64,000 bases of DNA from Zygnema circumcarinatum SAG 698-1b (lineage: Eukaryota; Plantae; Zygnematophyceae), in NCBI GenBank assembly GCA_037447605.1, contig CM074808.1, positions 2,480,001 to 2,544,000 of the forward strand, written 5' to 3'. This document shows, in pieces, positions 34,722 through 61,895 of this stretch. A program made the position numbers and the translations under genes. Under the pieces are notes generated by a model that had not been told where the DNA came from, made no database searches, and worked only from the letters and a program-made list of their open reading frames with translations. Each line of letters starts with the position of its first letter. The stretch's first letter is position 1.

Positions 34722-37700
34722 TCAAAAAAACAAGATAATGTCTTCCACTTTTTTTACTTTCACTGGATCGCCTCTCTTCAGCTCCGCCCTCCGGACTGGC
34801 GGCAACTGCTTGTAAGATGCGAGAAACGCTTTCAATCGTTGACCCACAGTGCGCACATTGATCGGTTTTCCCATTACCGCTGAATAGCCCACAGTAGCGT
34901 ACCTTCTCTGTAGCACATGGGCGCAATTTTTCCATAGAAACTGTAAGTACATGGACGGACATCACAAGCAGCTGCTGAATGAGTAAAAAGACAAAAGATG
35001 AGTACCCAAGTTGACCAGAAAAGCAAACGGCTAAGTATCTCTGACACAGCTTCTCAGGCCAGTTGCCGGTGTAAGGCTTTGGATGATAGAGTATGGCGAC
35101 TTTATTTATAAGATTCATAGATAGCTTACCACGTCGTCAGGCTCAACATTAGCTGAAATGGCGATGATAGGCATTTCCGGTAATCCATTGGCAATCTCAA
35201 AATCTCGGACATGCATGCACGCCTCAGAGCCGTTCATCACCTTCAACCTGCCGCCAGCCGGCTCTGACCAAGTGTTAGCAACTCCGCCAAACCATTCTTT
35301 CTGTGTAGACCTCACATAGTATGCGAACAGAGCACCGCAAGGTCCGTTAGTTGTTTGTCAAGTAAAGTGTTAACAGAGATAAAGAGCTAAAGAGCTAACT
35401 GAGGGTTCACACAAGTAAGTTCCATCTCCCGTACGCAAAACGACCTGCTATTCGTCAACAAGCAGTACAACAGCACCGTCCAATTTGATTAAGACTCACT
35501 GAAACATTCTAACTTAGACTGAAAAGACAGGAGGGTTGATTGCCCGTTATTGCAGAGGGAAAAGACACTCACCGTTCATCAAGCAAGAGAGCATCGAATT
35601 GCTGTCGCTGATTCACCACCAACTCCACTACGTCGGTTCCATCTGAGCCGATTACTACATTGAAGCTCGCTCTGCGTACATTACAAGAAACCTATCAGTG
35701 TTGGCTCGAAATTAGATCCTTCAAGGCATTGACTGCCTATCCGTCAAACAGCTCCCAAGATCGCAAAGGTGGTCCTGTACTAAGGGTCATTCTCGCCTGT
35801 GTAAAACCTCCTTGAAATGCCTACTTCTACCCTCCTTTCCCTTCTGCAACACCGCAAAACACGCAGACTACTAACCCAACAAATGACGCGAAGGAGGTTA
35901 TTTTTTTTTTTTTTAAATGAAACACAAATGTAGCCAAACCTACCTACGGGCAAACGTCAAAAAAAAAAAACGCAAAAGACGACGTTGCCCTTATTCAAAC
36001 TCCTCTGACAACAAGGAAGAGGAAAAGCTCATTCATACCGGTCCAGTGCTCGCTTCACGACCCTTACGTTCACCGGCTCATCATCAATGATAAGTACCTG
36101 CAATAAAAATTGAGCTCCGAAGGCATTGGACATGGCGGTACGACCTGATTGACACTTGTAGACCCTCGATGAATTTAACATCAGAAAACACATGGGATTT
36201 CTGAACTTTTGACTCAATTGGATTGTAAACTTTGTCATTGGGTTTCAACTCAGAAAAGAGACGTACCTTAGGGGTGACCCACTCATCCGGCTGTGGCGTA
36301 GAAGTTTCTTGACCAGGCAAATGGGGTTGTACAGGTTGTGCTTCTACGACTGTTAGATGCAGCTCCTCCGGCTGAAGTGGACTTCCCATGCCTAGTCCAA
36401 GAACTTTTGCCGATGGTTGTACTTCTCTAGTTTCAAGTACATATTTTGTATCTTGGCGTGACGGTATTATCGTCGACTGAGGGGGGAAGGGGTGGGTCAC
36501 TGGAAGAGACTTGGTAGAAATGAGCCGTGTACCTGACGACGAAGTTGTACCTGACGACGAAGTAGCGGAACTACTAAAGGAAGCTCCCAATCGGCCTAGT
36601 GCCACAGTAGGCGCAGCAGCAGTGTTAAACACGGGCTGCAACTCTGAAGATTGGCAAGCGTAAGAATAGGCATCTGTGTTGCCAGGTTGACATGGTGGGG
36701 ACAGGTTTGGAGGCATGGGCGGGCTGGGACTGTTAAGAGTTTGAATGGCCTTCTTAGTATGTGAACGAAGTGCTCCAACCAGCTTTGTGGCTGCTTCTGA
36801 TGCTTGGTTGTCCCTGACATTTCTAGTCATTCTCGGAGAACCAAACATACTACTACATGTTGATGAAGTTGTGCTGAACGCGCCCGCCAACCCTGCAATG
36901 GAATTCGCTCTAGACAAAGGTACAGATGCATCTGCTGCCACGGTTAGAGCAGTGGGCGTTGCCACTCCTGACTCCCTGGGAACTCCTCCTGGTCGTAGGT
37001 CTCCAGAGCAGGCCACCTTAACGTTCAAACTGTTCTTCTGCTTGAACATAGCTGCCACCTCCTGCAAAGCCTTTGCCGTTGCAGCCGCAAGAAGCAGCAC
37101 TGGGGGTCGACCGTCACAGGGAACAGCCCCCCATTGCTGTCTCACAGTGCCTCTGGTAATAACCTCTGCAAGAACGGCAACTGCATCTGAGGCTACATGT
37201 TCCCGTACAACTTTGAAACTCCATTCGTCCCCATAGATACTATTCAAATTAGCAGTAGCTGCTGCCTGGTCTTCCACTGGGTCTCTATGTTGGTCAGCAC
37301 TTGTCTTGTACATCAAAGGCTGAGATTCTGAACCTGTTGTTTGAATCTCAGCATTCCCACCTCCCGAACATAAAGTCACTTCGGGTCCGCCAGTTGCACA
37401 GGTTGCAGTCAAACTCGGCAAAGCTCCTCTCTGCCCCCAAGATGGATGAGACGCACCATTGAGTTGACCTTGAGGAAATGCTTTTGGAAAATGGACAGGC
37501 GCAATCCTGCTGGCAAATGCCGGAAAATTTTCTTTTCCGTTACCCTTCGGAAATGATGTGGGTGGCATAGAGGGAGAGGGCTTCTGTGCCAACCGAGAAT
37601 CCATTTGGCTTGAAGAACGGAATGTCGTCGCCGAGATACTCGTTTGGTGTGCTTCGCCTGTATCTGAGCTCTGCCCATTGCGACCACCAGAATCTATGAC

Positions 37701-40700
37701 GATTCTCTTCACTGGCAACCGTGCCTCAGTTGGCCCAGACTGCTCCTTCACTGACGTACGAGGAGCTGCATCCTGCGAATGGACACCTGACCCCTTCAAT
37801 GGCTGCCTACCTGCACTAAGATTTATCTTCAGTGGAGGGTAAGCTAGGTTCTGTGTGGGGCGTAGAGAAGGAAGTGAGTCTCCGGTCACCAAGGACACTT
37901 CATTGGCTGCTTTGAGGGTTGATGCCTTTCCGGCTGTAGTGTCTGCTTGCTCTCCGGCAGAAGCAGACGAGCCCGCCCTTGCTCCTCGACTAACGGTTTG
38001 TATATCCTTAACGTCAACACTGTTTGCAGCAACAGGGGGAGCCTTCAGTCCACTGCTGCCTTGGGCTTTTGCTTCCGTCCGCGTATCTGCTGAAGAGAAA
38101 TTGCTATACCCAAGTGGTCCCTCCTTTCGAGTACCCTGTCTCAAGCTTGAAGGGTCCTGGACATCGTTGACCATTCCTTGCTCTCTGTCTACCTCTCCAT
38201 TTGCCAGATGGAGCTTCCTCACACCAGGAAAATCAAAGCCATCGCTTGAATCATATGAATCGGAATCAGAGCATGATCCGTCTCCATTACTAAGGCGAGA
38301 AGACTGCTTCCCTTCAGCAAAACTCGCGTCTTTGGTACCATGTGACACAATTTGAAGATCGACGTCTAGTGAAAAAGTGGAGCCCTTTCCCACTTCTGAC
38401 TGGCAACGGATGTCTCCTCCCATAAGGGAAGCGAGCTGTTGGCAGATCGACAGGCCTGCATACATAGAATTTATGTTAGTTAAGATATATGTTAATGGAC
38501 AGGACATGCAACTGGCAAGACTGAAGTACCGAAAAAAACGATACTGGCAGTCTAACCAACTTTCACGCATGTCATCGGCTCCCGCAGGAGTACAGGCATG
38601 AGGGTGGCCCACGCAAATAACAACAGATAAGGCGAAGCAAGCGGCCATAAAATGGGCGATTTGGGGTTTACCGTAGGGTTTCAACGGCTCACTCACCCAA
38701 ACCAGTCCCGCCATATTGGCTCGAGGAAGCCTTTTTGCCGGTCGAATATTGTTCAAACAAACGCACACGCAGGCTCTCAGGTATTCCTTCCCCAGAATCA
38801 GCCACCCGAAAATGAAAGCGTGCGAACTGTTTCCCATCCGGCAGAACTGGTTGTGGTTCTTCCATCCCAATGCTAATCTCCACCCAACCTTTCTGCGTGA
38901 ATTTCACTGCATTCCAAGCGAAGTTGGAGAGCACCTGTTGGAGTCGTGGAGCATCTCCCAAGGGCCTATAAGTCCGGCATCGTGCCTCCACAGTGCTATA
39001 GAGTTGCAAGCCTTTCTTTGACGCTGCAATGCCCACTTGGCTGATAACTGCATTCACAATTCTTTGCAGGTGCAGTTCAGCACATTCGAGAACTACCTTC
39101 CCTTCCTCTATGGAATTAATGTCCAGAACGTCTTCCACGATCTTGCGCAGCTGATGCCCACAGGTGGCAGTCGTCTCAACAAGCTCCTTCTGCTCATCTG
39201 ACAGAGTGGTGTCCTCCATGAAAGAGATATTACCCAAAATACCGTTAAGGGGGTTGCGAATCTCATGACAGAGGAAGGCCAAATGGCGCGTTTTAGCATC
39301 AGCAGCAGCTTCAGCCGCCAATCGAACCGCCATCGCCTTCTCCATGGCGCGATGCATCGTCACATCCTCCATAAAGCACATCACCTGCAAGGGATCAAGA
39401 CTCCCCATGGATGCTGCCTGTCAAGATTCATAACGAAGAGACAAGACTTCTGCAGGACAACACCATGAATCTAGCTCCTAGATATTTCAAGCTGGATGAG
39501 ATAAATCTGAACTTTCTTGAAGACTTCACCTGATCCGATTCTAATTATCGTGAGTAACTAAAACTTTGCTGCGTTGAGGTCAAGCTCGCCACACAGGTTC
39601 AATAACGGCGTTGAGAAAATCCTTACGAAGTACGGCCGAAGGATACGATTCAAGATGAATTATTAAAGTAAACCCACATGTTTTTTGGTGCCCAGTGGAA
39701 GCACAACAAGGCCATCATCACTTTGGGAAAAGCTTTCAAAGGAAGAGTGAGTAGGCAGTGAAGTATGCGTCACATATGCATCAGCAACTACAGAAGGTGA
39801 TGGGTATAGCCAGTAGTTAGTTCATGATATCTCGTGTCGAGTATAGTGGGAGGAATCAACCATCAGCTTACCTGGGATGTGCTTGAGAAATCGTCCTTAC
39901 GAAGCTGAATGTTCAGAACCGAATCGACACTTCTGCCTTCATCATTCACAAACTTGAACTGTATAAGCGGAGTCTCGTGGCCTGCGAGAGCTCGCTGGAT
40001 AGCAAACTCCAAAGAGAGGAGTGTATCTCTCTCGGGCACCATAAGCCTTTTTTCCAAACCCACTAGCTCTCCCACCAGGTTCTTTCCAATGGCCTGCTCT
40101 TTCGCAATACCGCTGGTCTGCAGCAACACAATAATAAGCAAGCCATGTCATGCCTTCCATATCCTCCGCAATATAAGGTCAAAATGTGGCAGGAATAACG
40201 TATAGCAAGCAGTCAACAGCATCATTTTTTCAAAGTCCTGCTGCACATCACTGGAAGGTCATGACAGCCTCTACACATTCGCATTTCAGTGGCGTAAAAA
40301 AGGTGACGAGTCTTTAAATTTGGACACATAGTGAGGCTAACATGCTACTCACCTTAGCCATGGCATTGTTCCATTCGACAATCTTCCCCTCCTTGTCCAC
40401 TCCCCAAATGGGCATGGTGGCCTGTCCAGACAAAAAGAAGAGACTTGACAGTCAGCAGCAAAGTTCACAAACGGATTTCAAAAACTTCCCGCAATTACCC
40501 ATTTAGCACAAGCAACGCGGCATCCTTGAACACTGTAGAATCGCATATAAAAACCTTGACACCAAAACATAGCAATGAGCTGCTCATCATCCAAACGGCG
40601 ATTAACATAACATCAAGACAAACAGTTTTAGAAAGTGTTTCAATTATGGATCTGAGGGTGGCATGGAAAGGCGCCATAATTTTCACCTTATCAAGCATCT

Positions 40701-43700
40701 GTTTGTAATCTCCGGCACTCTCCTCAAATCGCTTCATCATCCGCTTCTGCTCTGTAATATCTTGCCCAATGATGCTCACGCCAATAACTTCATTCGTTGA
40801 ATCCCATTGAGGAGTCATAGTGGCCATCAAAACCATGGTGCCCACATCGCCTTCCTCACCTTCAGATGCGCATTTTCCTGTCAATGCCACTTTCTCCTGA
40901 TTGGCTGCCATTTTGCTTGTGCACTTCAGCATAAGCTCCACATGGTCCTGGGCTTTGCCTTCCATAGTTTGTTCCAATTTGAGACGTGCAATTTCAAGGC
41001 TTTGCGGAACGAGTACCTCTCCCAAGCCTTTGCCAATAACAGATGCCTGCAAAGCAAATTGAATCCCTTAAAGGCTGCAATTTTGACATTAAGCGGATCT
41101 GCCTCGAGAAGCAATTACCTCAGGAACTTAGGGAAATAACATGTCGACATAAGGAGATTATGCCTGCTATAAATATCAAAAGCTCGCTAAATCCCAAGCA
41201 AAAAGCTTACTCTTCAATTATTGTACCATCAACTTTTACTCGTGGGCCAGATATGAAGTATTCAGACGTAACAAATAATAGAGTGCATAAAGGCCGACCT
41301 AGCCGACTGATTCCTAACAAAACTTTGCTTACCTTTGGCCTCCCTGTTAGCTCTGCGATGCGATTATTCCATTCGGTAATTAGCATGTCCTTGCTAATGC
41401 CCATAATTGGAGTCTTTGAAATCTCCATCATCCGTCCAAGATCACGAGCTACCATAGCCAGATCCTGCATGGCCCTTAGTCTCTCCTCATTGAGCCGAAC
41501 CTGAAGAAATGCAACATTGCAAACCCGCGATCAGGAGTGAAAACAAGTGGAGCCAAACAAAGGGTCTACACTCAGACCCGATCTCTGCCCAAAAGTGCCC
41601 AAAACAAGAAATCCGTCAGTGCAAGCTCCATTGACAACATGCACAGAGCTCACTGCATTGCATTCCTGTTTCATATCTCCTTTGGTCATTGACTCAAACG
41701 TATGAATTCGTTGTGCAACTTCCCCGCCCCCATGATATCATCAACCATCTGGGCATAGCTTCTTGCAGGTCTTGGGGTTTGAGTAACAATTCAAGACACG
41801 GTCTGAAATAGTACCAGCATCATTGTCTTCATCGGCTCACTGTTCCCATTAAGAGTCTCTTGGGCCAACCGTTGAAGGCCCTTCACTCCTGCCAACTGAA
41901 AACATCCGAGAGCGAGCATCGATTAGACAGCTTGGCAAACTCGTAGAAAGGTTTGTCGATTCACCTCGTTCTCCCTTTTGACATGTAGCAATAGGGCTGG
42001 TCTGGTATAGCTGTAGATTTTGCATTTGCTTGACGAACTGAAGTATGTTGGCCAAGTTAGATAATGCCAAATTTGATAGAGTGAGGATGCAATGTACCTC
42101 TCCCGGAGTCCAGGATACAGATCTGGCCACATGGATCAGCCGTTTCGGGTCATCCACTACAGAACTACCTCCCGCCGCAGCATCTATCCAGGCCCACTCG
42201 ACAGCAGCTTGAATGCCTGCAACAAGTACACCGTTAAAATCAGGCCCTGAAACCTTTTCGTCAAGAACATCAAAACACACAGTAGAGCTTCAGACAGTTG
42301 CAAGTGACCATGTAAATGCATTCCATAAAAATTGTCCATTGTAAACAGAATGATGTGCTGTGTTCCGGGCATACGTTTGCGGAACCAAAGGAGGACATCG
42401 GTCTGAGAGATGGAAGCCATCAGAACTCCGCAGATGCCGTCCGGCATATTATCAGCTCTGGGAAAGCCCTCCTCCGCCAAGCTCGCGGTGTGAAACACAT
42501 CTTCTGCCCACGCTTTCTCTCTCGCCCAGCTCACAAGCTCTTGTATCTGTACGGCCAATCCACACCTAATCAGGACATTAGGCAGGACTGTCCGTCCAAA
42601 AGAGAATTGGAGCTCAAGTGAAAGGAGTGTGTGCACCAACGTTGTGCAAATGTAGACATTAGCCACCCAGATCCAAGGAGCCATTATGAGGCTCAGGATT
42701 TTTTTGTATCCAGCAGATTTTGGCACTGTCCCTTCGCTGAACAACAAGAGCTGTCAAATCTGAACTCCAATCTGTCTGTTGTAAAAAGCTACTCAGCGTT
42801 CAGCCCTCTAAAGCTCATCAAAGGGTGATATGACAAATTTCTGCAAAAAATTACCTGTTTGTCAGAAAGGGAGACACCATCTCTCACAACATGGCCACCT
42901 CGGAGATGTGCCACACCATCGCAGGGAACCTGCAGACGTCAGATAAGGAATGTAAACCATGGTGTGATGCAAACCACTACTGTTAATCTAATTAAGTTCA
43001 CCCGCATTGTAAGCCTAGACCTGCCACGTGCACATATCCCTTCCAGAAGTCACAACACTTTAAGAGGATAATCTGTCATATGAACGAGTGCATGCGATTC
43101 ATCCACCAAGGACATGGAGGTGCTTCCTCTTTTTCCGGATAAAAAGACATATTCTGAGGTCTTGCACTGCACTTACGAGCTGTCGTATGGAAGGTTTCTC
43201 GCATACTAAAGAGGAAGGCACTTGATATGTGAGCCGGTCGCAGATCGCCGCCTGCAGACTTGAGATGCGACGGTTCTCTATTCTCTCCGCACCTTTCACT
43301 GATGTCATAAGGTGGGCTCTGAGGGCCTGGGAACCACAAGTACTATCATCAGTCAATAGCTGCCAAAATTGTACTTGCGGAAAAAGACGATAGACATCAA
43401 CAACATGGGAGTGGTGTATTCAACCTCCACCAAGTTTGAGTGAGACAGAGGCAGTGTATCAAAAACACAGATAAGGAACACCTCAGCTTCTCGAGCCCTT
43501 AGCTGTTTCCCAGCGCAACAAGTAGGTAGCATACATTCACTCCTATACAATGACATTCAGCCATGTAATTGCCTTGGCTTGGTCAATTCCTGAACAGAGA
43601 AGCAGGCCACATCAGCAGGTAAATGTGGTAAGACTCAACTCACCTGAACAGTGAACGTGCATGCAGCCCGTTGTGAGGATGGAATAGTCTTCGCCTCGTT

Positions 43701-46500
43701 GTAATTGTGCATGATTATTAAGCCCCAAACTTTCCGCTGTGCTCTACTCACTAAAGTTAATGGCATCAGTAGCAGAGAACGGACCCCAATGGCCAAAAGA
43801 GCTTCACGCTGCTTCGCATCAACACCTGCAAGGATCCAAGTTTACTAAACTTAGCCACCAAGTCAAAGATACCGGAGGCACACTCGCAAAGGCGAGAAAC
43901 ATTAAGATTCCCAGGCAATTTTACTTGAGGTGCTTGATAGACGGGAAAAGGGAGGACTAAGGAGGGATGTACGTTCGTGCCTTGAGATTGCCCAACAATG
44001 CCAAAAATTTGCACTTCCACAGAAAGTGTGAAGTGCTCTTAAAGAAACTTCTACACAGTAAGAAGTGAAATGGATTGAACTAAGTACTACGTCCCAGGAA
44101 AAAAAGCTGGAGACAGACCTGCTAAAGGTGAAGCTGTGAGAGCGATAGGCTGCACGACAGAAGCATCTTGAAGCAGGTCCGACTGTCCGGAGGAAGCATC
44201 GTAAATAAAGCGCATGGGAATCTGCTCTTTGCTGCCATCGTCGAGCCATTCCTGAAAGATAGCAATAACCACAATGAGCTCAACTAGGAACTAACCGTTT
44301 CTAATTCTTACAAAACTGAAGGAAATGAAGTCCTTTCACAATGCTGGAGCCCCAGACACAACAGATGTTTCGACCCATTATTTCATCCGTTTCAGGTGAT
44401 AGCTGCTTTTGGGTCAGAACATTAGCATGGTTAGCAAATGCCATGTAAACACCAAACACATCAAAGCACATCCACAAGCCAAATGAGACCTCACATTTCG
44501 CATGTGCTAGAAAGAAAGCTTGACATGGGTCTAGTAAAAACTCCAAAAAATAAATGAATGGGGTTACCTGCGGGATGTGCGGTTGGGGAAAAAATTTGCC
44601 AAATAGAGGTTCCAAATCATCGTCGACCGCTTCGGCAATAATCTGCAGAGCTCACTCAATCGGATTCAAATTTGGTCTGCGTTCCTGCGTCTATTCCTAC
44701 ATGAATTACGTCATAAATGCATAAATTGCAACTAAATGCTGGCTCTGAATTATAAAGAGACTAAGCCAGACACTACTAGCAGAAATTGGGATCACAGCAC
44801 GTAGCAAAATGTTTACTTTAGGGTTTGTGATAATCCATAAGCCCCACAATGGACGACTCACAATATTTGAATTGTAACTTGACGGCTTACCTGGGCATGG
44901 CTTTCATATGAGAGTTGGCCAATAATCACTCTATTATAACCTGTCAAGTTTCTCAGTTCCTGCGCCGGTTCCACATCCTCAAAGTTAAAGTGGAGCACTA
45001 TAACAGTGCAGAAGCTACAAATAGCCGCCTCCCAAAACAGTCCATATTATTGCCATACAGCGGCGTCTGTACCGTAAGCTCCATCTGCTACCTCAGACTC
45101 CTTAATGCATAATGATCGCAGACTCACGCACTGCTGAGCATAGAGAGAAAATTGTTCAACTGGAGCACCTGCACAGCAGCGTTGCATAGCCATGCAATGT
45201 CCCTGTTGGGTGCAGCTTGAAGTCGATCAATTGCCCTTCGAGCTAGCTGGTGAAAGTGTAGGCGAGTGACTGCCATGAAAATTGCAGCACCTCGTTTGTC
45301 AGTCTGTCACGTCCCTATTCAAACCCAGCTATCCGTCCACCTTTCGTCTCTATTCAAGCAAAGCAGACAATTGTGGAATGCTTATCCCGGTTTAAAAATC
45401 TTTCGCAATTAGTGAAAATCAGGAGAGAAACAAATGAGACAGCTTGGCGTAAGGGTCACAAAAATCCTTAAGCACCTTGCTCTAAATCGCGCTCCAAACT
45501 CACGATAATCCCAGGGCCGGTTTTACAGCCTGTCAAGCAAAGGTAGTGGCCTGCAATTGGAATTGATAGGTCCAACGTCAGAGTAGACGTAACAACGGCC
45601 ATAATAGTGCACAAACGGTCGGACATGCTGCAGCAAACCTTGCAGGCATCCAATTGTTGATCAGGCCAACAGGAACACTTCGCTAACAAGCTGCTTTCAA
45701 CTTACCCGTTTCCCTAAGTAATACACGGCAAGTGCTTGTCCCATGCTCAGATGCCCGTTGAAGTAGAGATACTATGACAGAAAACACCTGCCAAGAGCTT
45801 CAAATAACGTTCAGAGTGCTGATCAAACCATCGAATCCACTCCGCGAGAGCTTTAAGTACAACCATATATGGCAGGGTAAAGGTAAACCTTCACAGCGGC
45901 CAGGATAAGAAATTCTCAGGTGCTACATAGCGTGCAGCAAATAGTGCTAGCTGCTATTAGGAAGTACACAAGAGGCTCTCAGGTCAGCCGGTTTGACATG
46001 CTAGCATGGTTCTATCTTTGGTGGATTCCAATAAACCAGAAGAGAGCAATAAAACTTACTTCTTCAGTGAGCAGCTCCTGAAGCTTCAAGCCCAATGTCG
46101 CCCTCGGTCCTAAAGAAATTACGTGATCTTGGACCTCAATAAACTGCAAGAGATTTTCACTAATGGCCAGAACCTGCAGAACCATGCTCCTCCATTAGTC
46201 CAATGAAGCATTCATCTGAAGCCTATCCATATGAATTGATTCTACTCCAATTCAGTGAATACGTTCATTTCTTCAATTCATTTTCACCAAAGCTCCGCTG
46301 GCCAACCATTGCCAGCACCCGAATTGCAACGTGCCCAAAACAGCAACGCAGCCATAAAAATCACCAGCTCGGGCTCACCCTGGGCGAGCTCTCACCTCGT
46401 GCGTCTTCTCGTCCACTACCAGCACGGCCCCGTGGCTTTGGCACAACACACCCGGCCGAAACGCAGTAACGGAGCGCATGTCTGCCCCGCTGGCAACCAT
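34722..46500 (-). CDS. Phytochrome-like hybrid histidine kinase (PAS-GAF-PHY-PAS-PAS-HisKA-HATPase-long linker-REC) lacking bilin-binding residues
   Basis: More than 20 in-frame exons, e.g. 46500-46396, 46173-46060, 45787-45706, 45550-45476, 44959-44891, 44642-44568, 44251-44119, 43825-43644, 39384-38697, 38455-36267, 36097-36039, 35671-35573, 35247-35130, 34907-34722. Kinase motifs [32 protein letters not shown] motifs IIDDE, LLLDE, ISA, GKP. Confidence 0.92.
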
Positions 46501-46536
46501 CCTTCTGCCGTCAGCGCTCCTCCCTCCGGCCGCGCG

Positions 46537-46599
46537 TCAAGCTCCGCCCGCCTCCCCGCGCGCGCAAGGAGGGCGGGAAGAAGTGGAGGAAGGTGCCAT
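46537..46599 (-). other. 20-codon upstream ORF (MAPSSTSSRPPCARGEAGGA*) in frame with the phytochrome-like ATG
   Basis: ATG at 46599 and TGA at 46539-46537; 99 nt upstream of, and in frame with, the ATG at 46500. Confidence 0.6.
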
Positions 46600-47221: not shown

Positions 47222-47316
47222 TGGCATTGATCTCACGATGGCGAGGCCGTCAAATGTACATGCACAAAAACAGCATGTGGAACCACGAGGGACTGGTCGC
47301 CATAGGACCTAGGCAC
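47222..47316 (+). repeat. Dispersed ~85-bp repeat, copy 3
   Basis: tggcattgatctcacgatggcgaggccgtcaaatgtaca...accacgagggactggtcgc...ggacctag. Confidence 0.8.
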
Positions 47317-47339
47317 AAATGAAAAAGGGTAGTGCTAAA

Positions 47340-49224: not shown

Positions 49225-49286
49225 GCCGTCAAATGTATACGGACAAAAGCAACATGTGGAGCAACCGGTCAAGGCGATCTAGGAAC
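49225..49286 (+). repeat. Dispersed repeat, partial and diverged copy 4
   Basis: gccgtcaaatgtatacggacaaaagcaacatgtgga...gatctagg. Confidence 0.55.
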
Positions 49287-49914
49287 TGAAAGGAAAGCTA
49301 CGTGCCCAGGAACGCAGCAGGCAGCTGCCGCGAAGGTCGCCCATGTCATCCGGGGGGGCACGTGACGCCGCGCGGCGGGAGGGAGGGAGGGAGGGAGGGA
49401 GGGAGGGCGAGGCCGCGCGTGCATCGATCGCCAAGGGCGGCGGCCACGGCGCGCTCGCGGACGGACGGACGGACGGCAAGCGCGCGCGCTTGTTCGCATG
49501 CAGACGGGCGGCGGCTCGGCTCGGCTCGACTCGCGGCCCGCAGCCGCAACATGGGGCCGCGCGCGGGAGCCGACAGACTCGGCGGCCGAGCGGCAAAAGC
49601 ACAGAACCGTACCGTCGTGGGCGCAGAAATCACGCACAAAAGTAGTTGCTCCCCCCCATCTACCGCGGCGCTGGGTCTGGCTGGCATTACGGGAGGCCGT
49701 CTCTCAGACTTTTAAAAAAAAATCGGCAGTTGTACTGAAGAAAATTGTTGATCAACTGTGGTACTATATGAGTACTTTGCAAATATATTGGTTCAGCTTC
49801 AGAAGAGTACTCGTTTCAAAAAAACTTTACTTCTACTGAAGAAAATGAGTCCGTTCGGTTTTTGCGAGTGCCGCCATAAGAGCCACGCCCGCCCGTCGCG
49901 GAGCTGTCGTCATC

Positions 49915-50040
49915 CACCAGACGTGGCGCCATATAAACTAGCCACGTGCCTGGTCTCGGCATGTGGATGACGTCACTATGGCGCCGACAAGACCGTCGCG
50001 ACACTCATTGATGAAGCCCTCCACCAGCGCGCCACGTGTC
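49915..50040 (+). promoter_or_regulatory. Proximal phytochrome promoter with G-boxes, ABRE-like and TGACGTCA motifs
   Basis: ACGTGGC at 49921, TATAAA at 49932, CACGTG at 49943 and 50033, TGACGTCA at 49968. Confidence 0.45.
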
Positions 50041-50275
50041 CGTTGGATGTCCGCAATTCTGTCGGTGCGTCCGCGTAGTGCCTCCGTACGGACGGGCGTA
50101 CGGGATCGTTTTCAGCTCGGTCACTTGGTACGGAATGGTACCAAACCGTACGGCACGTCGCGATGGTTAGCAAGCGCGGATGTACGGACAGCACGCGGCG
50201 GCGAGCGACCAAGGGTGGAGGGGGGGAGTGGGGAAGGGGAAAGAGGCCTGGCTGGAACAGCTGAGCGGGGCAGCC

Positions 50276-53200
50276 ATGGCCGTGCGCCTCTCCAAGGCCA
50301 AGAAGAACTTCCGCGTCGTGCAGGCGGCGGCGGATGCGCACCTCGAGTTCAACTTCGAGCAGCGCGCCAGAGAGGGCGCCCCCGGGAAATGGGATTATTT
50401 GAACTCTGTGGTGGAGCAGACGCGCCTGGCACACAAGGGGGTGGGTCGTTTCGCCTTGCTCTGTGCTCTGCCTCTGAAAGGAAGAGGGTGACTGCTGCCT
50501 ATCTCCTGCATGATCAGCGTGACAATTTTCAGTCCTCTCAAGATCGCAAGCAGAGGTTCCAAGACTTAGGTTCGGACGTGGATGAGCGCACGGCTGATTG
50601 AGGATATTGGTCGGGAACCTTTCAAAACGTAGAGGCTGCACAGCTTGCAAGGCGATGTTTTTCCATGTCCTTCAGGTCAACGTAGCGCAAGCAAGCAATT
50701 CTTGCATTGGTGTGCGTTTTTGCAGGACCTGGCTGCTGGGAAAGGAACAGGGCAGGATGAGAATGGTGTGGACGTCCACGCGTATCTGCACCATGTGCAG
50801 CGGCCTGGATTCATCCAACCCTTTGGGACTTTAGTCCTTGTGAACGAGAAGACATTGCAGGCAAGCGCTGCCCTGTGTTTTCCAAATTTAAACAAGATAG
50901 GCTGCATTCCTTACAGAGGCTTCAGATAACGCAAACATTCCTTTTAGGGCCTCGGTTTTGGAAGACCTACTGCGAGATAACTTTCTCAAGTAGCACACTA
51001 TACCTGTTGAAAAAGGGGACGAGCAACTTTAAAACTGCTCATGCGATAGTTCTGAACAGTTTCTTGCAGCTTCATTTCATTAAGAAACTAGGATTAGCGC
51101 CTCTAAAGGCCTCATGGAAGGGCTCGGCTGTGTTTACAGGTGCGGGCAGTTGCTGAGAATGCCTGGGACTACTTGGATAAGGAGGCTGATGAAGAGACAG
51201 CACATGAAATTTTAGGCAGAGATATCCGTCAAATGTTTACTCCGGAGGTAACATCACTTCCGAACCTCCTACTTTCGGCGGTCTTTTCGTGTGAATCCGT
51301 GAAGTAGAAGCTTCAAACGAAGTCCAGATTGCACTGAAGTTCACTTGCTGACACGTTTCTCCCTCGGCGAGACAGAGCATGGAGGACATGGAACAGAGTC
51401 TACAATGCTCAGATTTGAGTCTTGCGAACCCAGTAGCTGTTTATACCGCAAAAACAGGTAAGTGCGGGCGCAACTGAGCGCAAACTACGTCATTCAGCCT
51501 TTTGAAACTGTTTCCGAATGTTCAGTCGGTCAATTGTTGCGGACAAAGTGCAGTGTCTCAGTTAAATACTTCTGGCAATCTGTGTTGTCATACAGGGCGA
51601 GCTTTGTATGCAATCCTCCATAGAATTGACGAAGGAATAGTAATCGACTTGGAACCTCAGTGGGATGACGGTGAGTGATTTGTCCACACCAACAACCCTG
51701 TTAAAACATTTATTGGCTTGTTCCGACGCATCCGCAACTTCTCATTTGTTACTTTATGGGTCTTTTATTTCAAGAGTAATCTTGACAGCGTTGTTCGGCT
51801 GCAGAGGCTCGAGGAGCTGAAACGAAAGTCTTGGATAAGCACGATCGAGCATCGGCAAGCATTGCAAAGCTGCAGGGCTGCAATGACATGACTGACCTCT
51901 GCGATACTCTCGTGCAAGTGCGCATATTCGTCATGCCCTTGCCTAGATAGTTCAGATGTTTCGGTTCTTTTGCGGACGTCAGAGAGTGCTGCCTTACAGA
52001 AGGCTCATTCCGATGGCATAGTTCGGTGAAAGTTGTATCACTACAATTGCTTCTGTACGGAGGCAAAGTAGATGATGTTAAACAGGTTGAAGTCAGCATT
52101 GGACTTACCTTGTCTTGGAGTTATTTGGGATATGTTGTTGTTTCCAGGAAGTGAAGGCATTGACTGGCTATGATCGCATTATGCTCTACAGGTTCCATGA
52201 GGATCAACATGGAGAGGTCAGTTGGCCTTCAATCGCTAAATATTCGCGATGTGGGCTTGGGTGCGCTAAAACCCAATCATCCGCATTTTTCGTCCCGTAG
52301 CTGCCTACTCCAGACCTATTTTGCGAACTCGTTGGGATGGAGCCAGTTACAGATAGAATGCTCCATCGCCTTCCGGGTGCAAGCCTCTGGAATGGAGCTA
52401 TGGCAGACTGCATTGAAGCTGTTGGGATCGCGTCTTCCGCGGAGTCTAGAGTAGTGGAATCTTAGACGGAGATGAAGCTCAAGATGCATATGTTTGGTGA
52501 AGTCGAGATTCAAACGTATTTGCAGCATCATCCGTGAATTGCACTTGGATCTCAGACTGCTAATTGAGAGGAATGATTCGGAGAGGCTGCAGCTAATCGA
52601 CTTACTAAAGCATGCTGCAGAAGCTTGATTGGTTCAATCAGTTGGTGATTGTCATATACTGCAAGAAACTGCGAACCACTTCGCTTCCTTAGGTGTTTTC
52701 GCTGTCGTTTGTCGTCCTCGTTCAGGTTATTGCAGAAGCAAAAGAAGACTCTTTAGCTCCTCTTCTCGGTCTTCACTTTCCAGCAAACGATGTCCCTCAG
52801 GTACGTTCTTCCTGTATGCAGCTTGTGAGCTATAAGTCCTGGCTGGTGGGGCAGCCGTAGAGAAGGGCTTGATCATGGCATGACTAACTGTCCAATCTCC
52901 ATATGGAATGGTGCCGCAGGCAAACAGACAGTTGTTTGTGGATGTGCGGCTGAGGATGATTGCCGACACCCACGCTGGCAATGTTAACATCATCCAGGAT
53001 CCCCTTCTTGAGAATCCTATTCCTCTTTCAAAATCGACATTGCGAGGTCAGTCTTCACTTGTGCTGGTTTCAAGTCTGCTTGTGGATGATCCTCCCTCCC
53101 TCCCTCTTTCCCTCCCTCTTTCCCTCCCTCCCTCCACCCTCCCTCCCTCCCCTCCCTCCCTCCCTCCTCCCTCCCTCCCTCCTCCCTCCCTCCCTCCCTC

Positions 53201-56200
53201 CCTCCTCCCTCCTCCCTCCCTCCTCCACCCTCCTCCCTCCCTCCCTCCCTCCCTCCTCCCTCCCTCCCTCCCTCCTCCCTCCCTCCCTCCTCCCTCCCTC
53301 CCTCCCTCCCTCCTCCCTCCCTCCCTCCCTCCCTCCCTCCCTCCCTCCCTCCTCCCTCCCTCCCACCCTCCCTCCCTCCCTCCCTCCCTCCCTCCCTCCT
53401 CCTCCCTCCTCCTCCTCCCTCCCTCCTCCCTCCCAACCTCCCTCCCTCCCTCCCTCCCTCCCTCCCTCCCTCCCTCCCTCCCTCCCTCCCTCCCTCCCTC
53501 CTTCCCTCCCTCCCCTCCCTCCCTCCCTCCCTCCCTCCTCCCTCCCTCCTCCCTCCCTCCCTCCCTCCTCCCTCCCTCCCTCCCTCCCTCCCTCCCTCCC
53601 TCCCTCCCTCCTCCTCCCTCCTCCCTCCCTCCCTCCCTCCCTCCCTCCCTCCCTCCCTCCCTCCCTCCCTCCCTCCCTCCCTCCCTCCCTCCCTCCCTCC
53701 CTCTCCCTCCCTCCCTCCCTCCCTCCCTCCCTCCCTCCTCCCTCCCTCCCTCCCTCTCCTCCCTCCTCCCTCCCTCCCTCCCTCCCTCCCTCCCTCCCTC
53801 CCTCCCTCCCTCCCTCCCTCCCTCCTTCCCTCCCTCCCTCCTCCCTCCCTCCCTCCCTCCCTCCCTCCCTCCCTCCCTCCCTCCCTCCCTCCCTCCCTCC
53901 CTCTCCCTCCCTCCCCTCCCTTCCCTCCCTCCCTCCCTCCCTCCCTCCCTCCCTCCCCTCCCTCCCTCCCTCCCTCCCTCCCTCCCTCCCCTCCCTCCCT
54001 CCCTCCCCTCCCTCCCTCCCTCCCTCCCTCCCTCCCTCCCTCCCTCCCTCCTTCCCTCCCTCCCCTCCCTCCCTCCCTCCCTCCCTCCCTCCCCTCCCTC
54101 CCCTCCCTCCCCTCCCTCCCCTCCCTCCCCTCCCTCCCTCCCTCCCTCCCTCCCCTCCCTCCCCTCCCTCCCTCCCTCCCTCCCTCCCTCCCTCCCTCCC
54201 TCCCCTCCCTCCCCTCCCTCCCCTCCCTCCCTCCCTCCCTCCCTCCCTCCCTCCCCTCCCTCCCTCCCTCCCTCCCTCCCTTTCAAAGATTTTGAGTCGC
54301 CCAAATGAGTTGCCGCGTACAGGCGTGGCGGGTTGCCACAAGGAGTACAGTAAGAACCTTGGTTGCCAGGGCACCCTGGTTATGGCCGTCGTGGTGACGG
54401 TGGACCCCCAGCGCGCCCGCCATCTGTGGGGGCTCGTGTGCTGCCACCACCACTCCGGCCCGCGGGTCATCTCCTACCCGCAGCGCTGCGCCTGCGACTT
54501 CCTCATCCAAGCCTTCGCCCTGCAGCTGGCCATGGAGATGGAGGCAGCAGAGGAGGCTCGGGAGAAGCGGGTGCTGCACATGCAAGCGGTGCTCTGCGGG
54601 ATGCTGACCCGCGATGCTCCTCTTGGGCTGATCCGCCAGAGCCCAAACATACAGGACCTGGTAGCTGCCTCGCTTCCGCCTGCTTTCTTATCGTCCCATT
54701 TCCTGCAGGTGCAGGCTGTTGAACGAAGACTTTCTGGCAAAATTAACGAAAACCGGGTGTTGTGATGCGGTAATCGCAGGTTCCCGCTGACGGGGCCGTT
54801 CTGCTGCATGCTGGAAGAGCTTGGACTTTGGGATGTGCACCGTCTGAGGAGCAGGTTAGCCGACTCCCCCCTATCTGTTGACTTTTGGCTAGCTGCCATG
54901 GAAGAGGCGGACTGTGGGGAGGTTCAGTTTGGACTGAGTGGGAGGAGATGGGCTGTGGGCCGTGGGGCTCAGATTCCTGCCTTGGCTCAATGGCTGGTGG
55001 AGACGGAAGGGGAGCTTCTTTCTCAAGGCGTGTTTGTCGTGAATAGTTTGGAAGCGGCAGGCTATCCCGGGGCCGCTGCGCTTGCTCCGGGAGTGTGCGG
55101 GCTGGCGGCAGCCATGGTTTCGAATGGCGGTGATTTGCTCATGTGGTTTCGTTCGGGTAGGTTTCGATCATTCTCGAGGGACAAATTGGGGTCCTAGTTT
55201 TGTTTGTTTTAAGGTCTTTTCATTGTGACCGTACCATTTCTCAATCTTGGGGATGGACTCGTGTGTGCAGGAATGTCCAAAATGATCAAGTGGGCTGGGC
55301 ATAGGGCCACACACACAGTGAAAGAGGGGGCCAACATGCATCCTCGCATGTCGTTTGATGCATATTTGGAGGTGGCGAAGCTGCAGAGCCTCCCTTGGGA
55401 GGATGCTGAAGTGAGAACTGTTTGCACGCGTCAAACACCCACTTCCTTTCCTGCCTTTTGACGCTCTTTTGCATGGAACTCTCGCCCCTTTCTAGTGTGT
55501 TTTGCAGAATTTTCACCACAGGAAGTGGACTTATCAGAGCTCGGTGTGGCCGGGCTTGCAGGTGGATGCCATGCAGGGCTTGAAACTCATAGTTCGCGAT
55601 TCTCTCCCGGAGAAGGGTCCGCAAGAACTTCGGCTTAAAATTCAGGTTCAAAACTGCTTCCTCCTTAATCTATGAACTATTCGGATTTTTACTGTTGCTG
55701 CACAGTCTGTCTGCCTTCTTGCTTATCCAACATTGTTGCGTCGTTGGGACAGACGCGGCTGAATGCGGAACGTCTCCGCATTCAGAATCAGGTGACGCAA
55801 GTTGCCCGCAGCCTCCAAGTAGAGCTTGAGTCTGCCCGTGTACCCATCATCGGCCTTTGGGGCTCTGGAGTGGTGTCGGAATGGAATGGAAAAGTGGCAG
55901 AGCTCACCAAGCGGTCCAAGGTATGCCATGTCCAACTTGTCAACTTGAAGCTCTCTCATTCAACCTTCAACAAATAGGCAGTCGGTCAAACTTGAAATCA
56001 TGTCCATCCCAATGTTCTACACGCTTTGACTCAGTCTGCACCATACTTGTGTCAGAACGAAGTGATGGGGCTGAGCTTCCCTATGGACCTGCTAGTAGAC
56101 GAGTCGAGAGCGGCGTTTGCGAAAGCCATGGAGGTGGTGGCGGGGGGAGAGGAGGTAGAGCCCATAGAGCTCTGCCTTAGCGCTCGGCACCGCCCAGACG

Positions 56201-59200
56201 GGCCTCTAGACAGGCGGGTGCATGTAGTGGCCAGCCTCTACGGGCACCACGATACGCACGGAAACCTCATTGGGGTCCGCATGGTCGGTCAGGACATCAC
56301 CGCTCTCAAGGTCCTCAGTGGAGAGGTGCGCTGCCTGCCTGCCCGTATGGGGGACATCTCCTTTCTTTTGCAGCTTGAGCTCGTTTGGGAAGGGAATTGC
56401 TGCAGAGACTATGTAGGAGCAGGGGGGCGGGGAAATTGACTGCAGGGGTTTTGGGATAAGCAGTACATTGTTGCCCCGGAGGAGGCACGCGCTACACTGG
56501 ACAGGTCAGACATGCTCGTCTTTGCGGTGGATGAGGGAGGCCGTGTGACAGAGTGGAATGCAGCAATGGAACTACTAAGTGGACTCCCACGCGAGCGTGT
56601 GCTCAGCAGAAGACTGTTGGGTGATATCCTCAGCAGCTCGCCCGTGCTGGTCGTGCCAGACCCGGTACTGCCCTGCTTTTCTCCTCTCCGCCTGCCTCTC
56701 TAAGAGATTGGCAGAACTTTTCTCGATGTTTGAATCAGTAGGCTTCCCTTTGATTTGTGCGAGGAATCGGTGGGAGAGCTGACAACTGCATTGCGTATAT
56801 GCCCTAGTGTGGGGAGAATGCGGGATGGAGACTGGCAACGAGAATAAGCGGAGATGGCAGAGAGTGAAAGTGTCTCTGACGGGGGGGCGGGGCTGATTGC
56901 CGGGCGGCCCGGGGGGCCCAGCAGGACTCACTGGTGCTTTTTGAGATCGCCCTCTGCCAGGCCCTTAATGGTCAGGACACGCGAAACCACGAGTTCCACT
57001 TTCACACGTGGGATGGCAAGCAGATGGACACACTCATGCATATTATGACAAGGTCTTTCCCTCGTCCTTTCTTTCTGCATCTGCCTCTCGCTTCCCCTAT
57101 GCTTGTGCGGAGTACGAGAAGGAGTTGGGAATCATAAGTACCTTGGTCTCTAAAGCAAATGGCCATGATTAGAGTTTTTCAGTTTATTAGAACCAGTCAA
57201 GTTGAAGACCCCAGTATTTTTATTGTAAGCGAGATCCTTGCGGCTTGAGTGAGATTTCGGAAACCGGTGACTCAATTCCATTAAACTGATAGGAAAAGGA
57301 GGAAGGGAAGTAAGGGTAAGAAGTTGAACGTTTGATCCATGAATAGCATTGAAGACAATGTCAACCACCTAAACTCTCCTCCCCCTCCCCCCGCCCCCTT
57401 TCCCCAAAGTTGGACACTTCACCGTTTGGTACACGCACTGGCTGATGGGCTTGCTGAACTGCTTCTTGAAACTATCTAATATCCCAATGCCTCTTCAAAC
57501 GCTCCCTTTCGCATGCAGCACCCAGTTTCTCTTCTGCAGTCAGTCTGCAGTGTTTCACACGTGTATGGCCTTACACGGACTCTATGCCAATCTCTGTCAC
57601 TTACGGGACACACCTCCCCCATCAGACCGGATCAAACAATCTGTGCAGAAACTGAAAAGTTCTTGTACGAAGTGCAGCGCTGCCATTGACTATGTTACCG
57701 GCTTGCTGCCTTGCAGAAAGGGTCCCGATGGCGAGCCCATCGGTGCCACCTGCTTCATGCAGGACATGATGGAGCGGCGAGCAGCGGAGAATGCATCGGC
57801 GGTACGGATGGTAGCGGAGGCTGCCTCACAGGCCAAGACCATGCAGCTCGCCTGCCTCTGCCATGAGGTCAGCTCTCCCTCTCCCGTACCGGCATGCTCG
57901 CAATGATGAAACGGGTTACATTGTTGCTTCGTAGTGCTGAGTGGTCTTATATGTTGGTGAATAGATGTTGGAGTCTCGGTGGGCTTCAAGTGCTGGGCTG
58001 ATTTCAGGGAAGGAAATGGTGAATCTTTGCAGATTCGGAATCCGCTGAATGGCATCTTGAGCAGCATTAGCTTCATGCAAGATACCGATATGACTCCAGA
58101 ACAGCGAGACCTTGTGGTGACAACTGCTTCGTGTGGGTACGTGCGAAGATAAGGCTAATCCCTCCAGGGTAGAAGAAACTGTAACAGGTTTACATGTTCA
58201 CATGTTCAGGCCACACATTTAAGTATGGAGGTATTGTTGAGGTGAAGAATGCATAAATCCTTGTGTTGCAGTCAGTGAGTATGTCGTGCGAGTTTTCAGC
58301 ATTATGACAGAGGCAGTGGATGATGGGAGACCTGATAAAGGGTGTGATATGCGGTGCAGGAATTATTTACGGCGAGTTGTAGATGATGTTCTGGACCTGA
58401 GCAAAATCGAAGAAGGCAAGCTGGAGATTGAGAACGAGTCATTTTCGTTAATGCAAGTCATGGATGCGGTGGTCTCGCAGGTGAGCAGCGGACCAATTTT
58501 TTGGTCTTTTTGCAGGTCTTTAAACTCATTACGGAGCCGAACATGAGCAAAACTCATAATACTATCGGTATCCAAGATGTACTTCAAACCCCATTCCCGT
58601 TGATTCTCTGACACATAGCGGATATGCAACTTAATCCAAGGCATGTTGCACTTTGTATGTTGCTAGTTGAGAACGGCTTCTTTAGCTATCGAACGAAACT
58701 GAACATTGAACAACGTGCCTTTTCGAATCTGCAGGAGGCCCCCAACGCATTTGAGAAGGGTTTGCGGCTGTACTGCACCATAGACCCTGCTTGTCTCGGT
58801 GTGGGAGTGAAGGGTGACAGACTCCGTGTTCAGCAGATTGTGGCCAATTTTGCAAGAAACGCAGTGGAGTACACCTCCTCGGGATGGGTGGAGGTCAAGC
58901 TCAAAGCTGAACCCTCCTCCCTTTTGCAGAACTTCCGCTTTGTTTTCAAAGTCTCCGACACAGGAAAGGGCATTTCGCCCTCCCAATTGGGAGCCGTGTT
59001 CTCTGTGCCAGAAAGCCCGGAGACACCACCCGAGGCGCAAACTTCAAGGTGAGCTCCTCTTGCTCTGCCCACCATGAGTGTTTCCCTATGACAACCCATG
59101 TTTTGTTTCTTCCTCAACTTCACCGTTGCCAGATTAAAAATATCTGGGAGCTGGGAAAATCAAGGCAAATTTGGTGATACACACAGCATGTCCGTACTGT

Positions 59201-60051
59201 TCCAATACATTCTTATTGAATAAGGATGTAGTTCTATCTTACATAACGATCACAACTCAGCTAACGGTAATTCCTGGGCGAGCCCCCTTTACAAGAACTG
59301 TGGTCTTCTTGTAAATTCCACATCTGACAACGGGCTGTTTTGATCTCCCTCCTGCAGAGATGCCCTTGGAGGTGCAGGACTCGGATTAGTGGTGTGCCGG
59401 AAGCTGGCCTCCCTCATGGGGGGCACCGTCCATTGCACAACCCATGAAGGCAGCGGCTCCTCCTTCTTCCTCGATCTCGAACTGCTGCGAGTGGCTGAAC
59501 CCGAGGATGTGGACGAAGACTTCGAGCACGGGCAGCAGTGGAACAACAGACTGAGAGGGGTTATCTACACCACTGTGGGAGAGTGGAGCAGCGCTGAGGA
59601 GGTAGCTTCTGCAGAGCACGTGAGCCCCACAATGTCGCCCGTTGACGTGCAGGGGGGGGCGAGGACGGAGCAGCCGCCCACTCCCTCTGGAGAGGCAGCC
59701 GCTGAGAGTGCATCAGATGGGATGTGGTTTCCCGCGAGCGGTCTCATGTCAAGTGAGGGCTACGCAGCGGGGGGGCACTTGGAGCAGGCCTTTGGAGGGA
59801 AGTTCTCAGTGCAGGTGCTGAGAGAGATTATCGACTGGCAAGAGGTCGCAGTTCTTGTAGAGGTGGAGGTGATGGACGCTCAGACTGGTGAGAGGAGTAT
59901 GTCAATACAGGAGTGGGGATCGGCGCATCGCGTGGGGTCATTAGGGGAGGAGCTCCGAGCAGCCACTCGAAATGCTGTCATCACCGCAGCAAATTCATTA
60001 TCGGCTATTGAACGTGAAGTTCTGTCGTCTACTTTTCGTTCAACGGGATGA
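50276..60051 (+). CDS. PHY: Phytochrome with intact photosensory core and His-retaining kinase (NTE-PAS-GAF-PHY-PAS-PAS-HisKA-HATPase-novel C-terminus, no REC); PHYX-like by inference
   Basis: Exons 50276-50440, 50726-50860, 51140-51247, 51376-51457, 51596-51670, 51805-51917, 52148-52216, 52726-52800, 52920-53046, 54323-54660, 54780-54854, 54973-55156, 55271-55410, 55562-55645, 55753-55920, 56056-56310, 56446-56664, ~56922-57052, 57717-57867, 58033-58136, 58360-58480, 58735-59048, 59358-60051. Motifs [60 protein letters not shown]. Confidence 0.96.
53091..54281. repeat. ~1.2 kb imperfect (CCCT)n polypyrimidine array inside PHY intron 53047-54322
   Basis: Directly visible; almost exclusively C and T. 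Confidence 0.98.
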
Positions 60052-61895
60052 CTGCAAGTCTTTTTGTGTACAAACTGCCAGAAACCCCTCAAGGATAACT
60101 TATCTACTTGAACCTGCCGCCAATGCAATTGTATTATACGAGAAGGAGAAGTGGCATTCAGTAGTGATAGAGCAGACGTCTGACCCTAATGTCATTTGTA
60201 GCTAGCACGGGCTTGCCTGCCAGTGCAGGCGGAGCAGAGGTCATGTGCACCTCTGTTCACCTGCCTTCTGTAACTGGCGGTTATTTTTGGGATCAGCAAG
60301 CGCGAGCGGCTAGAGACCCCAGACAACGAAGGAGCAAAGTGTAAGCCAGCCCGCAGCATGCTTTTTTATGGCCCCTGCAACCGTGCTGCTTCCTGACTGT
60401 CTGCACACGTCTCAAGCAGTGAGAGGAGGTTAAACGGTTCGCTCTGCACAAATTGCTGGTCAATGCGGCCGCCTGCTGTGGCCAAGACTCCAGCCAGATG
60501 CTCTCATCTCCCTGTGGCTGCCGCTGCCTGAAGTACCCTCTGCACTCTCGCTCCGTGAACTGCCAATAAGGAATCGACAGAGATGACCCTCGGTGAACTG
60601 CAGGTTGTCTCCCTGTCTATTTAGATGCAGGGCATTAATAGAGGGACTGAGACGTCGAAGGTGCGTATGTGAACGTGTTTGCATACAGTGTAGAGCTTGA
60701 GGTAGAAAGCTGGATTCACTTGGATAAGGTGCGTCAAATGTAGAAGTGGTTATTGTCGCTGAAGCCAGTTGGAGCAGCAACGGTAGGAGCTGCATACTTG
60801 CCAAGCTTATATCGTCTCCCTCTCGTTGGAATAAATTGGCAAGTTGCGGTTTTGGAATTGTGAAATTCTGTGTCAGTTTGCAAAGTGGCAAAGTCATGGG
60901 CTTGTTTACGAAAAGTGTAAGGGCCCGTTATAGGTCGTTGGTCTTGGAGCAGGATTTGCCGCTCTGTAGGACTTCAGATTATTTACGCTCGCTTTGCTTC
61001 AAAGTGACTACTTGATCGATGGAGATCACAGAAACGAAAGCAATCCGCCCCATGCTTGCATACGATGTCTGGGTAGAGTAGAGCCACCAGCTTTGTGTCT
61101 GGAATGTGTCGTCTTTATGTTCTCGCACGAGTAAGGAGGGATGTGTTGTGTAACTTGTGTTGCATACAGCAGACTGCTGTCCATGTTGACATAGTGCCCA
61201 TGTAGGAGCATGATGAGTAATTCAATAACAGACATAAATCCAGAGAGTTAGCCACAACTTGACGACAAAATTCGGCTCATCAAGTGAGTTGACGTATGAA
61301 AGTGGTTTAGAGGAATGCGAGAGACAAGACCTGTCAAGCTGGAACTTTTGAAGCACGTGGATTGCCCAATTGAAAGTAGTTCACAACCTTCCGGCTTATC
61401 CCCATGTTAGCGCTATTGACACTCACCAGTAAGGCAATGGCAACCGACCTTGAGTGTAAGCCAGCCATGGCCTCGCTCTCCTTCTAGCCAAGTACCCGAT
61501 GACCCTTTAAACCGAGCACCACCTTCTCTCTTGTAGTCACCCCAACCTTGCCAACTCCCTTGTCCCCTCACCTTTCACGATCCCCCTCCCCTGGGCTACC
61601 ACACGAAGCCCCACGAGCCCCCCCCTCCCCAAAGTATGGAGCATGCGCCCATGCGCCCCAACACCCGTCCTCCGCCCCCTAGCGCCCCCCCCCCCGCCCG
61701 GCGGGGCGGCGCCCCAAAATATCAGCGCCCCCTCCAAGAGCCAATGGTCGCCTCCCCCGTTCCGGACGCGCCGCGTGCGCCACGTGGACTCTCGCACGTG
61801 TTACGGCATCCTCCCATTGGGCAGCGCGGGCTGCGCGTGACATAAATCGACATCAGCTGGATGGGCGGGCGCTTCCCTCTTTCGCCCTCACTTTC

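Follow-up and report, generated by a model that had tools for sequence, protein, structure and literature searches.

The stretch of DNA analysed here, a window of 64 kb from Zygnema circumcarinatum, is eukaryotic and holds two intron-rich phytochrome genes, head to head, each of which encodes a segment that fits none of the domains expected of a phytochrome. The locus therefore raises the question of what this segment is and what it could do at the output end of a photoreceptor kinase. The original prediction held that it was an unrecognised conserved domain of the Rad52/Rad22 type, fused to the kinase, and that it might link light signalling to DNA binding or repair, or else drive multimerisation. 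The host genes and the parts of the minus-strand gene that bear on the question are as follows.

50297..60051, + strand: phytochrome gene (PHYX2-like), from colinear tblastn with the full-length protein P0009; stop codon at 60049-60051
34728..45252, - strand: phytochrome gene (PHYX1-like), from colinear tblastn with P0004 and the Pfam architecture of P0004
39387-38349, - strand: HisKA-HATPase_c of the - gene
36100-36038, 35673-35572, 35249-35130 and 34865-34728, - strand: receiver exons of the - gene

The + gene is laid out as PAS-GAF-PHY-PAS-PAS-HisKA-HATPase_c-module, with the His of HisKA kept and no receiver domain; P0009, the protein used to trace it, is a full-length phytochrome of 1429 aa with the Pfam architecture PAS_2-GAF-PHY-PAS-PAS-HisKA-HATPase_c. 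The - gene consists of a photosensory part, a PAS domain, HisKA-HATPase_c, a long linker with the module, and receiver exons, the last being found in this gene only. P0004, a 1930-aa protein of Mesotaenium endlicherianum, is 79% identical to the - gene in the kinase and 68-95% identical in the receiver exons (tblastn). Both genes encode the kinase motif H-E-I-R-N-P-L-N-G, with its phospho-acceptor His, and the closest homologues of both come from Mesotaenium, Closterium, and Spirogloea. In layout, kept His and closest homologues, the two genes fit the description of the charophyte phytochromes PHYX1 and PHYX2 (Li et al., 2015; PMC4525182), which they match in the order PAS-GAF-PHY-PAS-PAS-kinase, the retained His, and the occurrence in Zygnematophyceae. 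The - gene matches PHYX1, some of which carry a receiver, by its receiver domain, and the two forms of module described below correspond approximately to PHYX1 (type B) and PHYX2 (type A). Charophyte PHYX1 lacks all conserved chromophore-binding cysteines (Li et al., 2015). The first exons detected by tblastn in the + and - genes are ~5 kb apart (45252-50297), and the head-to-head genes may have a common bidirectional promoter region.

The two copies of the segment and the features of the surrounding + exon are located as follows.

59755..60018, + strand: Rad52-core-like module, type A, at the C-terminal end of the + phytochrome (HMM E 1.6e-30); stop at 60049-60051
37035..37271, - strand: Rad52-core-like module, type B, between kinase and receiver of the - phytochrome (HMM E 3.7e-28)
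59356..60051, + strand: coding part of the + gene's last exon (end of HATPase_c, linker, module, stop), from RNA contigs
59554..59631, + strand: another short conserved motif, lying between HATPase_c and module in the linker of type A (R-G-V-I/V-Y..V-G-E-W-S..E-E-[IVL]..A)

Both peptide strings quoted in the original prediction are present in the DNA, at the coordinates given there. The + copy comprises residues 123-205 of the last-exon ORF (59389-60051) and the - copy approximately residues 537-612 of the ORF 38870-36084; a six-frame HMM scan of the 64-kb window found exactly these two copies, the next best score being E 0.21. When the two exon ORFs were compared by BLASTP, only the HATPase_c tails (E 2e-9) and the module (E 4e-4, 34% identity) aligned, and the low-complexity linkers between them gave no alignment between the + and - ORFs. 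The short linker motif at 59554-59631 is common to the + copy, P0001, P0002, P0003, and P0005.

RNA contigs from four public runs, all of this organism, were aligned to positions 55000-60600. They show 12 exons of the + gene from 55000 onward, separated by GT..AG introns, with a splice from 59046 to 59356 (GT..AG) after which they continue unspliced to at least 60600, so that the last exon runs on as 3' UTR past 60600. The joined exons form one open frame of 844 codons that encodes the end of PHY, two PAS domains, HisKA (its phospho-acceptor His present), HATPase_c, and the module. The + module belongs to the same spliced mRNA as the kinase and is followed by the stop codon, which bears out the predicted fusion to a phytochrome kinase. 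For the - gene, the order kinase-module-receiver recurs in transcript-derived proteins of other algae, in P0006 (a Trinity transcript) and in P0013, the published phytochrome of Tetraselmis astigmatica (AIS82727.1). Two minor observations were made on the transcripts of the + gene. The intron starting at 56664 has alternative splice acceptors 3 bases apart, 56921 (runs X1 and X2) and 56924 (runs X6 and X3), so that the second PAS region varies by one codon. A low-depth contig of 581 bases (57052-57632, run X1) lies wholly within the 664-base intron 57051-57714 and could be a retained intron, unspliced precursor, or DNA carry-over.

To examine the segment beyond the window, we searched a profile of its two copies against 1.84 billion representative proteins (HMMER). 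The 20 matches at E<=1e-3 were of only two kinds: 11 algal proteins of phytochrome or kinase type and nine non-algal proteins of stand-alone type. The algal matches are phytochromes, kinase fragments or gene-model fragments in which the module follows HATPase_c, and they come from Spirogloea muscicola (two proteins), Mesotaenium, Closterium NIES-68, Closterium NIES-53, and Tetraselmis, with two UniParc entries (one of them also a Trinity transcript) and three ENA contigs as further sources. Aligned with generous flanks, these 11 modules and the two window copies (13 in all) share a block of ~75 residues with invariant V, A-V-L, W, L, and A-T, and the flanks on either side cannot be aligned. 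Two types are distinguished. In type A (+ gene, P0001, P0002, P0003, P0005, and P0009) strands 2 and 3 are separated by a small insertion, and the protein ends with the module. In type B (- gene, P0004, P0006, P0007, P0011, P0013, and P0018, from Mesotaenium, Closterium, Spirogloea, and Tetraselmis besides the window) the module is flanked by long disordered linkers, and a receiver comes next wherever the protein is complete. Judged from these alignments, the module is a conserved domain, due neither to chance nor to low complexity, and the earlier claim of a conserved domain in otherwise unalignable sequence, made from two copies, now extends to 11 more proteins. Since it has been kept in two paralogues, and in a chlorophyte (Tetraselmis) as well as in streptophytes, amid linkers that have decayed, the module appears to be under selection. 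Word-indexed homologue searches with the module region of the - ORF, P0013, and P0009 returned nothing new, which is a weak blank since such searches need shared 5-mers and length.

The nine non-algal matches place the module by sequence. They are short, stand-alone metagenomic proteins with library-wide E-values of 2e-6 to 9e-4, and seven of them reach the gathering score of the Pfam family Rad52_Rad22 (PF04098); one falls just short (19.5 vs 20.3 bits) and in the last a core of evident similarity is joined to an NTF2-like domain. When the 13 modules were compared with the nine stand-alone proteins by hhalign, the probability was 99.5% (E 3e-23, 79 columns), and a profile of the nine proteins, searched against the PDB, found the N-terminal domain of human RAD52 (E 2e-6) and yeast Rad52 (1.5e-3). 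The motifs L-N..F-G..W-S-F, V-A-V-L, Q-Q-W-G-S, and L-K-A-A-T are common to the modules and their Rad52-like relatives. Neighbours in the ESM Atlas lean toward the Rad52_Rad22 and Sak clusters, a lead with a score of only 0.74. Neither the two exon ORFs, the two segments nor any of the 13 modules has a Rad52 match in Pfam, where only noise was returned (e.g., bDLD3, E 0.07), and the module gave nothing relevant against PDB sequences by phmmer or profile. The profile comparison suggested with the original prediction thus succeeded through the stand-alone Rad52 relatives and failed as a direct match to Pfam or to a PDB sequence. Indeed, the domain has gone unannotated because the modules, taken alone, fall short of both the Pfam model and every PDB sequence, and the description of it as unrecognised holds in the literature as well: published phytochrome domain schemes include only PAS, GAF, PHY, H/KD, REC, RING, and PKC, and no Rad52-like module (Li et al., 2015; PMC4525182).

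The closest sequence relatives, at 26-35% core identity, are the stand-alone prokaryotic or phage Rad52-like proteins P0008, P0010, P0015, P0016, P0019, and P0020. P0017 has ordinary bacterial genes as neighbours, and P0015 belongs to a compact, phage-like row of genes. Unlike the modules, the stand-alone relatives keep the N-terminal hairpin region, a K-K pair and F-G-V-G-L, and by these features they look like working annealing proteins. As a separate observation, P0014 and a cluster of similar proteins (P0021-P0026) are metagenomic proteins of ~287 aa whose N-terminus is hydrophobic and whose Rad52-like core is combined with an NTF2-like domain (Cds6_C) at the C-terminus; their core has I-K instead of the K-K pair and represents another non-canonical Rad52-core fusion.

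Structures predicted by AlphaFold2 had a pLDDT of 90.8 and pTM of 0.80 for the + copy and a pLDDT of 95.6 and pTM of 0.84 for the - copy; the input was a 22-row alignment that included stand-alone Rad52-like rows, which could bias the models toward the Rad52 fold. Both models begin with a helix, continue with three long antiparallel strands and close with a long helix (H-E-E-E-H). When Foldseek's top 1000 PDB matches to the + model were re-aligned with VIA-align, human RAD52 ranked first (Z 10.2, rmsd 2.2 Å, 78 of 88 residues, chain residues 68-161), followed by Mgm101 (Z 9.7) and yeast Rad52 (Z 9.2). A Foldseek-independent search with the - model gave the same order, with RAD52 at Z 10.3 over all 79 residues, Mgm101 at 9.4 and yeast Rad52 at 9.0, and then dsRNA-binding domains at Z <=8.3 over 64-68 residues. 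The two models superpose on RAD52 with an rmsd of 1.9-2.2 Å over 78-79 residues. Against Swiss-Prot models, all 30 among the matches listed for the - model belong to the Rad52 superfamily (RAD52, Arabidopsis RAD52-like 1 and 2, MGM101, RAD59, DdrA, and RDM1), as do 24 of the 30 listed for the + model, among them the 16 best; lipoproteins and uncharacterised proteins make up the other six, with a TM below 0.45 in five and of 0.47 in one. A dsRBD identity was considered and rejected, its topology being alike (Z 7-8.9, 62-68 residues) but ranking below RAD52, and Pfam gave no dsrm match at E<=10. The modelled modules have the beta-beta-beta-alpha core fold of the Rad52 superfamily, and the Rad52/Rad22-type fold that had been proposed from sequence patterns is upheld by the library search, by hhalign, and by RAD52 as top structural match for both models, with unrelated folds such as the dsRBD ranking lower. 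Taken with the sequence matches, the module is very probably homologous to the central helix, three-strand, and long-helix core of the superfamily (approximately residues 67-161 of human RAD52).

Set beside the RAD52 family itself (PF04098; human RAD52, PDB 1kn0, 5xrz, and 8ril), the module has the same helix, three bent antiparallel strands and long helix, and resembles it in motifs around the W-S strand, V-A-V-L, the W-G turn, and the A-A-T helix. However, it lacks the beta1-beta2 hairpin, the basic track K152/R153/R156, the conserved F-G-x-G-L, and the cap helices; it sits in a photoreceptor kinase and is not stand-alone; and no individual module reaches the Pfam model. Arabidopsis RAD52-like 1 and 2 (ODB1 family), Mgm101, RAD59, DdrA, and RDM1 have the same fold, with a TM of 0.71-0.79, normalised to the module, for the two Arabidopsis proteins. 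All six are only 12-26% identical to the module, were absent from the sequence search, and are not fused to a sensor kinase. In RDM1 (RAD52 motif-containing protein 1) a short Rad52 motif is combined with an unrelated domain, which makes it a precedent.

The elements that are missing bear directly on function. In human RAD52, K152, R153, and R156 on the long helix contact the ssDNA backbone, and the ssDNA bases stack against the beta-hairpin of residues 52-66, which includes R55 and V63 (Saotome et al., 2018; PMC6137706). We mapped these columns by HMM alignment to RAD52 together with the 22-row alignment. At the positions equivalent to K152/R153/R156 the + copy has I/T/N and the - copy Q/E/A. 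Across the 13 phytochrome modules the K152/R153 site is basic only singly (R-E or R-N) and in no case dibasic, vs two basic residues (K-K or R-K) in seven of the nine stand-alone relatives and one in the other two. There is no counterpart of the beta1-beta2 hairpin, the stand-alone profile aligning to the window only from its own position 41 or 49, to 117, and in the 13 proteins the sequence upstream of the module is unconserved and of low complexity. The Gly of the F-G motif (F-G-x-G-L), just after the long helix, is replaced in 12 of 13 modules, with the Phe kept in some type B copies. The C-terminal cap is also absent, since type A proteins end 5-40 residues past the helix and type B proteins enter an unconserved linker. 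By these comparisons the module is the Rad52 core only and covers roughly half the annealing domain. With both DNA-contact elements missing, it is unlikely to anneal ssDNA in the canonical way, and the canonical ssDNA groove has probably been lost. The part of the original prediction that suggested a role for the module in ssDNA binding or repair is therefore not supported, the hairpin and the K152/R153 equivalents being missing.

What is left of Rad52 is the portion that makes up the ring body. The residues that determine the fold are kept, and the module most likely lacks DNA annealing activity. It might instead serve as a folded protein-protein module, either in self-association of a kinase that is already dimeric or as a docking platform in the output region between kinase and receiver. 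We tentatively favour such a self-association or docking role, with a little under even confidence, and give roughly even credence to the overall reading, a Rad52-core module without its DNA-contact parts that acts as a protein-protein module. Multimerisation, which the original prediction offered as an alternative, is a candidate role here. A complete Rad52 ring may, however, depend on the N- and C-terminal parts that are missing, so that self-association may be beyond the core alone.

Among other explanations, the module could be a working nucleic-acid-binding output domain that engages ssDNA, RNA or DNA ends through a surface other than the inner groove of RAD52. The known members of the superfamily all bind nucleic acids, the helix-3-strand-helix topology is common to dsRNA-binding domains (Z 7-8.9), and phytochromes of Micromonas and plants are reported to enter the nucleus in light, according to work cited in a passage of PMC8209157. 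Type A modules have an Arg at the position equivalent to RAD52 K144, and with the scattered basic residues that remain in several copies this makes some nucleic-acid affinity possible. However, besides the absence of the hairpin and of the K152/R153 pair, the only conserved basic position in the 13 modules is Arg23, which lies in a strand beside an invariant acidic residue, and the net core charge is negative (mean -2, and -5 in the + copy, vs +0.3 in the stand-alone relatives), a difference that is slight and not decisive. We therefore consider this explanation rather unlikely, and equally so its corollary that a light-activated, possibly nuclear, phytochrome would touch DNA or RNA directly; if it were true, nucleic-acid transactions would be tied to red/far-red light with no need for a transcription factor as a separate partner.

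Alternatively, the module could be an evolutionary relic, a captured Rad52 fragment that serves as a mere folded spacer without specific interaction. It is truncated, has lost its functional residues, and is set in long low-complexity linkers, all of which a relic would explain. However, a neutral relic would have decayed as the linkers did, and this block, with its invariant V, A-V-L, W, L, and A-T, persists in chlorophytes as well as streptophytes and in two paralogous lineages, which makes a relic quite improbable. Finally, that the segment is unrelated to Rad52, a dsRBD-like or other small alpha/beta domain of convergent resemblance, is very improbable: dsRBDs and some lipoproteins do occur among the structural matches (Z 7-8.9) and a direct PF04098 match is lacking, but the library-wide matches are specifically Rad52_Rad22 proteins, hhalign agrees, and RAD52 came first in every search and aligned over 78-79 residues vs 62-68 for dsRBDs.

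The fusion places a known fold in an architecture that is new, and the functional surface of that fold is degenerate. Catalogued phytochrome output modules are kinase, receiver, RING, Ser/Thr kinase, phototropin, and cryptochrome, and a Rad52-derived folded domain at the output end would be a new entry among them. The full texts searched, a scope outside which many subscription papers fall, describe no fusion of a phytochrome with Rad52 or of Rad52 with a histidine kinase. A Rad52 core that has lost its DNA-contact elements and been put to use outside DNA metabolism would also be rare, and the module gives a concrete, easily testable handle on non-canonical algal phytochrome signalling. Since standard Pfam annotation misses it, similar modules may hide in other long algal sensor kinases.

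With regard to origin, the nearest sequence relatives of the module are prokaryotic or phage proteins of Rad52 type, the plant RAD52-like/ODB1 proteins appearing only in structural searches. A tree of 22 cores (~75 residues) recovered a type A clade (99/96), a moderately supported group of streptophyte type B (88/97), and a pairing of Tetraselmis and P0011 (97/99); a single origin of the module, or a particular donor, is neither demonstrated nor refuted by it. Because the module is common to zygnematophycean PHYX-type genes and a chlorophyte phytochrome, it may predate the split of the two green lineages. A bolder extension, which we regard as unlikely and which would give these photoreceptors a property not known from any phytochrome, is that the module assembles kinase dimers into Rad52-style rings or higher-order bodies, or binds ssDNA or RNA via a re-invented surface, and is an ancestral green-lineage feature that was lost before the canonical plant phytochromes arose.

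Apart from the phytochrome genes, an exon-like ORF was observed at the end of the window (63249-63476, + strand), and it contains a string that we take to resemble 6-phosphogluconate dehydrogenase.
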